Positions 53,368-58,201 of a stretch of 64,000 bases of DNA are shown piece by piece. The first letter of the stretch is position 1. Each line of letters begins with the position of its first letter. Position numbers and translations under genes: made by a program. Source of the DNA: Macrostomum lignano (Eukaryota); the NCBI GenBank assembly GCA_002269645.1, contig NIVC01000474.1, positions 33,006 to 97,005 on the forward strand, written 5' to 3'. A model generated the notes under the pieces. The model saw only the letters and a list, made by a program, of their open reading frames with translations, searched no databases and had not been told where the DNA came from.

Positions 53368-56300
53368 ATGGCGTTAGCTGCGGCGGTCAGCTTCTGTATT
53401 GGCCTGATCTGCCTAACGGCTGGTTCATCTTACGGCGCATCGATTCGTTGCACATTCGACGGGGTGCAGATTCCTGTTAATGACACGTACACGTATCTTC
53501 AAGGCTGCCACGAGATTACCTGCGTCTGCGATCCCAACCTGCAGCAGATGTGCAAGAGTGTGCCGAGTGAGTATCTACGAGTTATCTTCATGTATCTACC
53601 TATGAACTGCTCTAATTCTATTCACTAAACCTCATCCATAGAGGGCTGTCTGCATCCGCTGGGCACATGCGTGGACGAGAATGCGCGCTACGAAATGAAC
53701 ACAACGCGAGGAGTTCACGAGTGCATCTGTCGGCGAGAGATAGACGGCAAGAGTCTTGTCGGAACTGAGTGCACTATCAGTGAGTAGCACTCTTTTAAGC
53801 TGTACCGTATCTTCTAAGCTCTTATGGGTTATCATAAAAGCTCGTTGCAGCTTCCACTCTGTCTGCTTCAACAATTAGCCTCTAGACTATCATCTGACAT
53901 CAAAGTCGAAGTCGAACAAGCTTTGCAAGAAGAATTCGGATTTCAAACTCTGGAATCATTCTTCTCATCGCTTTATTGCATCTTTGCCGTGATCAAGTAG
54001 AACCACAATTAGAATTCAATGGCTGTATTCCTTGCCTAGTTGTCTCGCTCACTGCAGCGGAAGTATTCTGCTTGACTTCTTCCCAGGGTATTTTCAAACT
54101 ATGACTTGCTTTTTAGTCTTTACAAACATCAGTAAGAATTTTTTGGGGAAGGGGGGCATCACAAACCCGAAAAATCACAACTCCGAAATATCATAACTTT
54201 AAAATTGCTAGCAATGTCCTTTTCGCTTTCGGAGTTATGGAGTCCGTTAATGATCACTTCTGTCCTGTACCCACTAGAGCGATGTCTGGACGTTGACGGC
54301 ACGTACAAAAGCGTCGGCGAGCGAGTCACCGTGTCGCTTAGCGGCACATTGTTTGAGTGCACCTGCGGCGGCCGCATGGATTATTGCAACTGTTCGACTT
54401 TGGAGTCGATTCGTAACGCTGACAAATGCCTGGACGTCAATGGGCATTACATCCAGTCTGGTCACCGGGTTGTTACGCAAAGTGAAAATGGTGAATTTCT
54501 AATTTGCACTTGTCGCGGCAGTTCCGGTTACTCTGACTGCATGACCCAGGCCGAGTACGACCATCAGGATATGTGCCAGGGCAAGGACCACCAGTGGGTT
54601 ACCAAGGGCAGCGAATTACGGATCGAATTTCAAGGCGATGATTACATCTGTCGGTGCAACGGTACCAACAAGCACGCCGGATGTCGCCTAGCAGACGAGG
54701 ACGCGAACAAGTACCGGGGCCGCTGCCAAGACTACCATGGCCGGTTGGTTAAGGCTGGCGGCTACGTTCGGATTCTTCGCGGCGGTGCTGTGTTCGTCTG
54801 CCACTGCACTGGTACGAACACACACGAGGGCTGCCTAACGGAGCAGGCTTTTTCGCACAGAGATGACTGCATCGATCTTAGCGGTGGCTATGTTAAGCGC
54901 GGCCGACTGGTGCGTATTCTCAACAACGAGAACGTGATTGTTTGCACCTGTAAAGGCTCGTCAGGTTATTCGGACTGCCAGTCAGAGCAGGATTATAGCA
55001 CGCGAAATCAATGCAAAGGTGCCGATGGAAAATTTGTATCCAAGGGCCGCAAAGTACGAATAGTCAGCGAGGGTATAAGCTACGTTTGCCACTGCGCTGG
55101 AGCGGCAGGCTACAAGAACTGCTTGACAGAGGAGGCTTACATGAACAAGGGCAAGTGCAAGGACGTAAACGGGCAGTATGTTGACAGAGGCAAAGAAGTC
55201 GTGGTGTTTCACCACAGCATCCTGTATCAGTGTAAATGCATTGGAACCAACAGGTACCAGCAATGCAAGGACTACAACGCGATCGTCAACGCTGATAAAT
55301 GCAAGAACTACAACGATACTTACGTAGAGGCGGGACAGATTGTGGTAATTAAAAGCTCCACAAATACAACTTTTTACTGTGAGTGCATGGGCAGCCAAGG
55401 ATATAAAAACTGCTTGACTAAAGAAATATTCGACAATATCAACAGATGTCAGAGTGCTAACGGTTCCTACGTTGAAATAGGCGAGGTTGTAGAATACAAG
55501 GTGTCAGGAACCATCTACGTTTGCGAGTGCAACGGGACAAACAAGTACAAAGATTGTCTATCAAAAGATGCATATTTGAATCGCGACCGATGTCGAGATG
55601 TCGACGGCAAGTATGTCGGCCGAGGTGAAGCAGTCCGAGTGTTGTCAGGTACCGAAGTCTACATTTGCCAGTGCCACGGTAGTAAAGGCATCGCCGAGTG
55701 CATGAGCAACGAAACTTACTACCATCGAGGCATGTGCAAGGACCTGGAGGGAAACTTCCTTCCAAAAGGCGAGAAGATCTCTATTGAGCAGAATGAAATC
55801 ATCTATGTCTGCGATTGCATCGGCAATAACACTTACAAAAACTGTAAGACAATAGAGGCATTTCAAAACGCTGGCCGTTGCAAAGGACACAACGGATCTT
55901 ACACAGATATTGGCGAGCCTGTAGCTGTAAAACATGATAATTATATCTTTGTGTGTATCTGCAATGGCACGAATAATTACATTCAATGTATGCTCGAGGA
56001 GACATGGAACAACCAAAATAAGTGCAAAGACATAGATGGAATTTATGTTAGCGAAGATGAACTCGTCAAGCATCAAGTAGGGGCCAAAATTTATGTTTGC
56101 CACTGCAAAGGAACAAATAAGTATGCTAACTGCGTTCCACAGGACGTCTTCAATAATCGCGGAAAGTGCCGCGATCGTGATGGAGATTACGTAGAACCTG
56201 GAAAGAAGGTCCGAATACGTCACGGAAAAAGGCGCTACGTTTGCGATTGCGAAGGTGAGAATCTCTACAAACAATGCGTCACTGAAGATCAATTTGAGAA

Positions 56301-58201
56301 CAGAGAAAATTGCATTGGTAGCGATGGTGAATATGTACTTCGGATGAGAAGGTAAAGGTTGAAGTAGAGCAGGAATCATACGTGTGCACCTGCAAGGGAG
56401 CAATGGGTTATAGCGACTGTGTGAGTGAAGAATCGCTGCTACATAAGGACCAGTGCAAGGATGCTGTTAGTAAGAACTATTCAAAACGAGGTGAGAAAGT
56501 GCGGGTCCGGTGCGAGAAACAAAGTATTATCTTCATATGCGAATGCGCCGGCTCTAATCAGTACCGAAACTGCGTGACGGAGTTGAGCGTTAAAAACCAA
56601 GGCAAATGCAAAGATAAAAACGGCACGTTTGTTCCGCAGGGCCAGCTTGTTCGGCACATCGTCTCTGAGACTTTGTATGTATGCAACTGCGGCGGCACAA
56701 ATAGGTACCTGGACTGCATGACCGAGACGCAGTACAACAACAGACACAAGTGCCGTGGCATGGATGAAAACTACGTCGAGGAAGGTCAAATGGTAGTTGT
56801 TAAGTCCGGAGCAGACGTATTTGTTTGCATTTGCAACGGTAGCGACGGATTCAGGAACTGTGTGACAAACGAGACTTATCACAATAGGGACAAGTGCCGT
56901 GACCTTCATGGTAACTACGTTGGAAAAGGTGAAAAAGTTTCAATTGAGCGCGAAAATCAAATTTACGTTTGCAATTGCGGAGGCAATAATGCTTATAAGA
57001 ACTGCCAAACATTAGAGGCATTTGAAAACAATGGCCGTTGTAAAGGTTACAATGAGTCGTACGTGGACGCGGGAGAGCCTGTTGTCGTGAAGCAAGACCA
57101 GTACACCTATGTATGCATTTGCAACGGTACAAACAAATTTGTTCAGTGCATGCAAGAGGAGGTCTGGAGAAATAAGAACAAATGCAGAGATATCGATGGT
57201 AGCTACGTTGAAGAGGATGATCGAGTAAATTACCGGTACAATAACAAATCTACGTTTGTCGTTGCAAAGGAACAAACAGGTACGCCGACTGTGTCACCAA
57301 AGAGGCTTTTGAAAACCAAGGCAAATGCCGAGCAAGTGACGGCAGCTATGCTGCACCGGGACAAACCGTCCGTGTTGAGCATGGAGGCAAGGCGTACATC
57401 TGCTTATGCGAAGGTCACAATCAGTACGGCAAGTGCATGACTGAAGAGACTTACGCTAATCGTGAGAGGTGCAAGGGCAGCGATGGTATCTATGTCGACA
57501 AGGGACAGAAAGTAAAGGTCAATGTTGAGCACTTGGTATACGTGTGCGTCTGCAAAGGCCAAATGGGCTACAGTGATTGTGTAACAGAGGAGTCCCTACT
57601 GCATCAGGACCAGTGCAAGGACGTGGTTAGCGGGGAATTCATTAGTAAAGGGGACAACGTACGAATACGGTGCGATCAGAAAAGTGCTGTATTTGTCTGC
57701 GAATGTATTGGCACCGATCAGTATAGAGGATGCGTGACGGAGGAGAGCATAAAGAACAGAGGCAAGTGTAAGGACGACAATGGCACATACGTATCTCAAG
57801 GACAAAATGTGGCGAGAACAGCCGATGGGAAAACCTTCATTTGCGTGTGCCAGGGCACAAACAACTATGGCAACTGCATGACGGAGGAGGACTACGTGAA
57901 TCGGGATAAGTGCAAGGATCATCGTAGTGGGAGGTACATTGACTACGGGGACACCGTGACAGTGCTATACGCCGGCAAAGTTTGGATCTGTGTATGCGCT
58001 AAAGGTCCGCAGTACACCCAGTGCCAACCGGAAGCGACGGAGGAAGACTCGAATACGTCTGGCTGTAAGGACAAGCACGGCAATTGGATAAAGGCTGGGG
58101 ATTACTACCAGATCATGTCGAGAGGCGTCGCCTACAGCTGCCGATGCAAAGGCAACAATGTTGCTGTTGACTGCGAATGTAAGCTGGGCGGTTGCGTCTG
58201 A
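53368..58201 (+). CDS. Secreted cysteine-rich protein with 27 tandem ~48-aa FN1-like modules, about 1374 aa if two 1-nt deletions are corrected; exons 53368-53566 and 54278-58201
   Basis: Signal-like MALAAAVSFCIGLICLTAGSSYG; phase-1 intron GTGAGT...CTAG; module pattern C-x24-C-x-C-x8-C continues through ORFs 54205..56355, 56382..57440 and 57437..58201, with frame breaks near 56340 and 57247. Confidence 0.87.

Follow-up and report, generated by a model that had tools for sequence, protein, structure and literature searches.

Fibronectin type I modules (FN1 or FnI, PF00039), present in 12 copies per chain in fibronectin and also in tPA, factor XII and HGFA, are modules of about 40 residues with four cysteines, a central CxC motif and the spacing C-x23-25-CxC-x8-10-C. 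Subdomain 1 of the pan-metazoan VWC module (PF00093) is classed in the same fold as FnI. FN1 is listed as chordate-specific and described as 'largely confined to chordates' (Hynes 2012, PMC3308698). The subject of this report is a gene with three exons in the flatworm Macrostomum lignano, located at positions 53368-58201 on the forward strand of a 64,000-nucleotide stretch of contig NIVC01000474.1 (assembly GCA_002269645.1, contig positions 33,006 to 97,005), which we call the window and to which the coordinates below refer. The gene, which is without an entry in the deposited annotation, encodes a conceptual protein with 27 consecutive regular modules that resemble FN1 in length, in their four cysteines and in their central CxC, and for which an FnI-like fold is predicted. 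By sequence these modules constitute a new family with an FnI-like predicted fold, and they are not members of PF00039.

The regular modules are 37-40 residues long and are connected by linkers of 11-13 residues, with a period of 48 residues. All 27 possess the spacing C-x24-27-CxC-x8-C, and each is recognized by the module profile with 34-64 bits (E 1e-12 to 1e-21); a scan of the 64-kb window with the same profile found no further copies elsewhere in it. Mean pairwise identity between modules is about 35%. Kept despite this divergence are the four cysteines, the glycines at alignment columns 13 and 33, the valine at column 16 and a tyrosine or phenylalanine at columns 9, 27 and 37, while the linker follows an 11-residue conserved consensus, x-T-E-E-x-Y/F-x-N-x-x-K. 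The most conserved stretch apart from the cysteines is the E strand with its turn, G-T/S-N-x-Y-x-x-C. At the position of the strand-B Tyr of FN1 a Tyr, Phe or Trp is retained in 24 of 25 modules, and Val is found in 22 of 25 at the column that corresponds to the strand-C Trp.

The region 53368-58201 is not a single open frame, but is divided by two phase-1 introns of the GTGAGT...AG type and carries two -1 frameshifts in exon 3. The ATG at 53368 is the first one after an in-frame stop and, when the last exon is read through, the gene ends with the TGA at 58199-58201. The exons and introns are the following:

53368-53566, forward strand: exon 1, with the start codon, the signal peptide (residues 1-23, nucleotides 53368-53436) and an atypical five-cysteine cap module (C28, C47, C52, C54, C62); a GTGAGT donor follows its phase-1 end.
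53567-53641, forward strand: intron 1, 75 nucleotides, GTGAGT...ATAG, phase 1.
53642-53779, forward strand: exon 2, 138 nucleotides, symmetric (phase 1-1), with a second atypical five-cysteine module (C68, C75, C93-x-C95, C110).
53780-54277, forward strand: intron 2, 498 nucleotides, GTGAGT...CTAG, phase 1.
54278-58201, forward strand: exon 3, a single exon holding all 27 regular FnI-like modules (nucleotides 54283-58177).

When the exons are joined and one base is added at each frameshift site, a conceptual protein of 1420 residues is obtained, which consists of the signal peptide, the five-cysteine cap (C28-C62), the second five-cysteine module and the 27 regular modules (residues 115-1412). 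The mature protein would be about 157 kDa in size with an isoelectric point of 6.6. It contains 123 cysteines in total, an odd number, with extra cysteines in modules 1, 16 and 24, and 20 N-x-S/T sequons that cluster at module positions 5 and 29. The sole hydropathy peak of the whole protein lies at residues 1-6, in the signal peptide, and no transmembrane-like stretch follows later. It is likely, as part of our best explanation, which we grade as a whole, that the product is a secreted glycoprotein without a membrane anchor. These results are in accordance with the original prediction, made earlier from the letters of the DNA, which had described a secreted protein of 27 modules after a signal peptide and a five-cysteine cap, with a spacing of C-x24-CxC-x8-C, linkers of about 11 residues, many N-glycosylation sequons, no transmembrane segment, Val mostly in place of the FN1 Trp and a probably non-chordate host, now known to be M. 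lignano. In one respect the architecture had to be refined: the five-cysteine cap is present, but the second atypical five-cysteine module, encoded by exon 2, had not been separated from it. The original prediction had also made no mention of the two introns, the two frameshifts and a possible small fourth exon.

The fold of the regular modules was predicted with AlphaFold2 in two runs. The first comprised modules 9-11 with an alignment of other module triplets, and the second a single module with an alignment of the 24 other modules; templates were used in neither. Mean predicted local distance difference test scores (pLDDT) were 91.9 for the triplet and 88.8 for the single module, all five models being at least 84 in both runs. 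Both runs gave the same layout according to DSSP, i.e. a paired element at residues 2 and 8, antiparallel strands at 14-19, 22-28/30 and 33/34-39, and a short helix at 40-44/46 in the linker. We compared the models with 350,542 PDB chains using Foldseek and inspected the top 50 for each query. With the three-module model the first 16 places were all taken by FnI arrays of fibronectin (FnI 7-9, 2-3, 4-5, 8-9 and 1-2), with E from 6.5e-6 to 1.8e-2 and a probability of 0.82-1.00, after which there was only noise. With the single module the first 17 places were all FnI modules of fibronectin or factor XII, with TMq of about 0.5 and a root mean square deviation of 2.1-4 Å over 34-45 columns, each E being insignificant, as expected at 48 residues. 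No VWC structure was present in the top 50 of either query. In the predicted hairpin of strands D and E, C26 and C37 are cross-strand partners (30/33 ... 26/37). Because C26 faces C37, C2 would pair with C4 and C1 would be left to C3, so that the disulfides, as far as strand register rather than coordinates can tell, fit the C1-C3 and C2-C4 pattern of FN1. We therefore consider it probable that the regular modules adopt an FnI-like mini-fold, in which an N-terminal two-strand element lies on a three-stranded antiparallel sheet.

It could be argued that the prediction was misled, i.e. that AlphaFold matched the cysteine spacing to FN1 while the true fold is another one. The alignments were indeed shallow (19 and 25 rows) and consisted of internal repeats only, and small disulfide-rich domains are hard cases. 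We nevertheless consider this quite improbable, since two independent runs without templates arrived at an identical strand layout with pLDDT of at least 84 in five models, and since the conserved glycines, aromatics and valine are situated on strands and turns as the FnI fold predicts. Taking the FnI-like fold as the preferred reading, the likeness to FN1 extends to a predicted beta fold of two plus three strands, to Gly and aromatic residues at matching positions and to the arrangement in tandem arrays in secreted proteins, and FN1 modules are the best and exclusive structural neighbours. The differences are also clear. The flatworm linker is a conserved helix of 11 residues, Val stands in place of the core Trp in strand C, and the sequences do not match significantly. 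The protein belongs to a flatworm and not to a chordate; in it 27 (plus two) copies follow one another, no FnII, FnIII, kringle, EGF or protease domains accompany them, and a single exon encodes every regular module. In terms of what defines FN1, the modules thus have the cysteine spacing C-x23-25-C-x-C-x8-10-C and, on the predicted models, the two-sheet beta fold, but they do not reach the gathering score and do not have the core aromatics (Tyr of strand B, Trp of strand C) as FN1 has them.

Other small extracellular modules agree less well. The flatworm cap module is similar to VWC in having an extra cysteine shortly before CxC, but the regular modules have four cysteines and not ten, and they are without the C2xxC3xC4 and C8C9xxC10 motifs, the CC pair and subdomain 2. 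The ten cysteines and two subdomains that define VWC are thus absent, and VWC was seen neither among Pfam matches nor in the Foldseek top 50. The four cysteines also separate the modules from SVWC (PF15430), which has eight and whose profile they do not match. EGF-like modules are likewise small, disulfide-rich and extracellular with a CxC-containing hairpin, but possess six cysteines (1-3, 2-4, 5-6); the best EGF match, EGF_C8A_B_C6, had E=0.034 in one of 25 modules, and no EGF-only structure was found among the fold matches. The original prediction had left the choice between a poly-FN1 and a 'half-VWC' protein, and it is solely the ranking of the predicted folds that makes FnI the preferred one. 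Its FN1-like reading is thus supported at the level of the predicted fold, where the first 16 and 17 Foldseek places are all FnI, and neither an unrelated fold nor a match to a known invertebrate repeat family, which it had named as grounds for abandoning it, was found.

Searches of sequence collections found relatives in M. lignano only. In Pfam nothing significant was found for the protein or for single modules; apart from the EGF match given above, the weak ones included TILa (E=0.0031, one of 25 modules), and the profile check against fn1, VWC and SVWC that the original prediction had proposed gave an insignificant fn1 score and, at E<=10, no match to VWC or SVWC. A word-indexed search with the first 799 residues found no homologue, an exact look-up of the 254-residue C-terminal open reading frame found none on record, and an Rfam scan of the window gave nothing. 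The module profile had no significant match among PDB sequences, a fibronectin F1 pair being third with E=0.7. An exhaustive hmmsearch of 1.84 billion protein representatives with this profile returned three true clusters, all from M. lignano. We also inspected and rejected as false positives the matches P0004-P0006, which are a CDGSH-like repeat and low-complexity repeats. P0010 (1703 residues) was set aside as well, being a spurious read-through translation in which the short paralogue described below is embedded; together with P0002 and P0003 (UniRef/MetaClust) it represents frameshifted or read-through mis-predictions of that paralogue from an older assembly.

The best relative is PAA82805.1 (BOX15_Mlig026500g2), a protein of 290 residues with a profile E of 1.9e-36. 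Mlig026500 is present in four gene copies (g1-g4), which are named 'hypothetical protein' and carry the automatic UniRef name 'EGF-like domain-containing protein'; we do not follow this EGF-like label, as there is no significant Pfam EGF match and there are four cysteines instead of six. The paralogue has the signal peptide, the five-cysteine cap and the five-cysteine second module of the window gene, with all 10 N-terminal cysteines conserved. Its exon layout, read from the locus L002, is likewise one of three exons with phase-1 introns, in which exon 1 ends alike and the second module has its own exon. It differs in having four regular modules against 27, in an N-terminal identity to the window gene of only about 30%, and in being annotated and intact, whereas the assembled window gene has frameshifts and no annotation. 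The window gene thus shares all that characterizes the Mlig026500 family: signal peptide, two five-cysteine modules, regular modules and phase-1 introns between them. The introns of Mlig026500g2 (L002 6270-7400) are full of minisatellites that read as long open reading frames on both strands. The last intron of the paralogue also has a possible counterpart at the end of the window gene, where the following candidate features are found:

58179-58279, forward strand: possible intron 3, T/GTAAGC...TTTCAG, phase 1, with an acceptor at 58279 that is rated good.
58280-58329, forward strand: possible small terminal exon, with the stop TGA at 58327-58329, a candidate only.

The donor of this putative intron (58178/58179) has the same position and phase, C4 plus one codon plus one nucleotide, as the last intron in L002. 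Its splicing may change the C-terminus from ...VDCECKLGGCV to ...VDCE-FAQSNEDSNSQWKGGR, judging from the genomic sequence. Searches of M. lignano papers (full text and supplements) found nothing on expression or annotation of Mlig026500, and no papers matched a literature search for 'fibronectin type I' and flatworm. By sequence, the family is an orphan and lineage-restricted as far as current databases show, which agrees with the original prediction that this is not a described family: Pfam has nothing, and the sole relatives are 'hypothetical' M. lignano proteins. Because the sequence tests for PF00039, VWC, SVWC and EGF fail, and of the FnI tests only cysteine spacing and predicted fold agree, we file the modules as a new family and not under PF00039.

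Several results speak against the interpretation given so far and are gathered here. The Pfam fn1 profile reached 7.6 bits (E=5.9, in a 195-residue piece) against a gathering cut-off of 27 bits, and among single modules it matched one of 25 (E=0.037). An alignment of the flatworm profile with nine human FN1 modules by hhalign was in register over 38 columns, with a probability of 18.8% and P=0.0012, and matched the positions G, Y, G, CxC, G and C4, but shuffles in which the cysteines were held fixed reached the same score in 14 of 200 cases. A PDB search with the human fibronectin N-terminal region from which these nine modules were taken gave 100% identity over residues 266-573 and full-length matches to chains of modules 1-5. 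A control with full-column shuffling was erratic (maximum score 132), hence the cysteine-fixed control alone was used for hhalign. The sequence evidence for FN1 homology beyond the cysteine frame is thus marginal, and the core Trp of FN1 is replaced by Val. The fold, moreover, is a prediction, and the function proposed further below is reached by analogy alone. With its two frameshifts the gene as assembled cannot yield the full protein, and no transcript, protein or expression evidence for it was found in any of the collections searched. The resemblance to FnI therefore holds at the level of the predicted fold and is not one of established descent.

The apparent likeness could be attributed either to common ancestry with chordate FN1 or to convergence or a different ancestry, with modules whose origin lies inside the flatworms or in VWC subdomain 1 and is separate from that of chordate FN1. 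We lean somewhat towards the latter. A beta mini-fold of 37 residues with two disulfides may be easy to reach, and this argument rivals the evolutionary reading of our results and not the structural one. It is in accordance with the insignificant PF00039 match, with a hhalign score equalled by 7% of the cysteine-fixed shuffles, with a family found only in M. lignano among the representatives searched, and with those features in which the modules are unlike FN1, i.e. Val for the core Trp, a helical linker of 11 residues and 27 modules in one exon. The extra cysteine of the cap just before CxC (C47-x4-C52-x-C54) is reminiscent of C2-x2-C3-x-C4 of VWC, as would suit an origin from that domain. 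Independent origin is less easily reconciled with structural neighbours that are exclusively FnI in the top 16-17 places, with no VWC in the top 50, or with the in-register hhalign match over 38 columns and its shared G, aromatic and G positions. Phase-1 introns at module borders are typical of shuffled mobile metazoan modules, and the two introns of the window gene are of this kind, which also argues against it. That the flatworm modules are true homologues of chordate FN1 we regard as improbable.

The coding sequence itself carries traces of an older history in the form of a duplicated block of seven modules:

55735-56750, forward strand: modules 11-17, first copy of the seven-module block duplication.
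56895-57910, forward strand: modules 19-25, second copy of the seven-module block duplication.

The two copies are 50-70% identical in amino acids, against a background of about 35%. Between them the proportion of synonymous differences (pS) is 0.83, i.e. saturated, and the proportion of nonsynonymous differences (pN) is 0.26; judged by this divergence the duplication is ancient. No stop codons occur within 4.2 kb (about 1400 codons). Since pS is saturated while pN is 0.26, and since about 1400 codons are without a stop, the sequence evolved under purifying selection as coding sequence. This bears on how the two interruptions of exon 3 should be understood:

56336-56345, forward strand: frameshift 1, one base missing near gtactt^cgg (after about 56340) in module 15; the window frame changes from 0 to 2.
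57246-57248, forward strand: frameshift 2, an A-run AAA, probably AAAA, in module 21; the frame changes from 2 to 1.

The module register is unbroken across both sites. With one base added at the first, module 15 has the standard 37 residues and aligns with its duplicate, module 23, with 70% identity; with an A added at the second, the reading becomes ...NNKIYVCRC, in which 'KIYVC' is identical in the duplicate module 13. The assembly GCA_002269645.1 (Mlig_3_7) was made with Canu from PacBio reads and polished by Pilon with Illumina and RNA-seq reads. We judge it fairly likely that the frameshifts are assembly errors. In the other case both frameshifts would be real, the gene would be a recently inactivated pseudogene, this copy would no longer make the protein, and an intact homeologue may exist elsewhere; M. 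lignano has been described as neopolyploid with redundant copies. Such a pseudogene seems to us possible rather than likely. Two -1 frameshifts in one exon, the absence of the gene from the deposited annotation and from the protein sets searched, and the redundancy of a neopolyploid genome all speak for it, and polishing with Illumina and RNA-seq reads should have cleared many indels. On the other hand, each lesion consists of one base lost from a short homopolymer (TT, AAA), an error typical of PacBio, on which the assembly is based, and polishing is weakest where sequence is internally repetitive and multi-copy. About 1400 codons carry no stop or other lesion, which indicates strong past constraint, and the conserved residues return as soon as one base is restored.

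With regard to function, the signal peptide, the lack of an anchor, the sequons, the 29 disulfide-locked modules, the rigid-looking linkers and the odd cysteines suggest a long, multivalent, disulfide-stabilized scaffold outside the cell, which would resemble beads on a string. It might be a component of a gland secretion, matrix, mucus, adhesive or egg-shell, and it could cross-link or multimerize by disulfide exchange through the odd cysteines of modules 1, 16 and 24. In fibronectin FnI modules the E strand forms the edge to which extended peptides attach by strand addition. The best structural matches of the flatworm modules, 3cal, 2rkz, 2rl0 and 3ejh, are FnI pairs with bound peptides, and by analogy with fibronectin FnI arrays the conserved E strand of the protein (G-T/S-N-x-Y-x-x-C) might take up extended partner chains by beta-strand addition. 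That the protein serves a secretion or matrix as a multivalent scaffold or binder is accordingly no more than a tentative proposal. Tandem cysteine-rich secreted modules are also a common architecture of inhibitors, as in multi-Kazal, antistasin and TIL arrays, and the weak TILa match of one module (E=0.0031) would suit a multi-headed inhibitor or toxin-like array that is processed into protease inhibitors or defence peptides. This we consider very unlikely: there is no significant match to inhibitor families, the linker consensus has no recurring dibasic processing sites, the fold neighbours are FnI and not inhibitor folds, and conserved helical linkers suggest a rigid array rather than cleavable spacers.

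The neighbours of the gene in the window are ordinary genes (Argonaute, Lon protease, a CBM21 protein, translin and a DDE_3 transposase), and there is no cluster of related genes. The features observed are:

9465-10199, reverse strand: CBM21 carbohydrate-binding open reading frame, a domain typical of the glycogen-targeting subunits of protein phosphatase 1.
13405-14529, forward strand: intact transposase open reading frame of 374 residues with helix-turn-helix and DDE_3 domains (Pfam E 4.6e-19), consistent with a DNA transposon of Tc1/mariner type.
17476-20154, forward strand: single-exon open reading frame like tubulin-tyrosine ligase (TTLL), 892 residues, G+C content 0.64, an exact match to an annotated gene of NIVC01000474.1.
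25637-29530, reverse strand: Argonaute exons with ArgoN, ArgoL1, PAZ and Piwi (Pfam E down to 4e-78).
32905-33465, forward strand: translin-family exon.
39432-44323, forward strand: Lon protease exons (AAA, Lon_lid, Lon_C).
About 43300-43800: minisatellite between the Lon lid and protease exons, with an open frame on both strands.
58785-59288 and 60850-61518, reverse strand: Ala/Gly-rich open reading frames of 167 and 222 residues, just downstream of the gene and on the opposite strand, neither matched by Pfam; possibly exons that belong to an unrelated gene.

Micro- and minisatellite arrays are very dense at 1099-1578, 1985-2623, 3268-4077, 6132-6976, 8115-8606, 15863-17237, 22025-22720, 34418-35074 and 35900-37100. 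They yield long spurious open reading frames in several frames, which is consistent with the repeat-rich and hard-to-assemble genome of M. lignano. The G+C content drops sharply at 30001-32000 (0.275) and at 62001-64000 (0.305), compared with about 0.47 elsewhere.

What stands out at this locus is an FnI-like fold that is confidently predicted and repeated 27-29 times in a flatworm secreted protein for which no sequence relatives were detected outside the species. Caution is needed, because so tiny a fold is maybe easy to reinvent, a single species is involved and the only available sequence is frameshifted, and as long as expression and function have not been worked out the finding has limited practical value. 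With it, a flatworm that serves as a model for bioadhesion, reproduction and regeneration gains a large secreted protein absent from its annotation, and this protein offers a natural test bed for the question of whether binding by strand addition in FnI arrays is general to the fold. Its evolutionary meaning can be one of two, a clean convergence on a disulfide mini-fold or a hint that the FnI fold is older than thought. If the modules were true homologues, the FnI finger would not have originated with chordates. The ancestor of bilaterians would already have had it, perhaps in the form of a VWC subdomain 1 derivative standing on its own, most lineages would since have lost it or changed it past recognition, and the poly-FnI protein of Macrostomum would show the role of such arrays before fibronectin.

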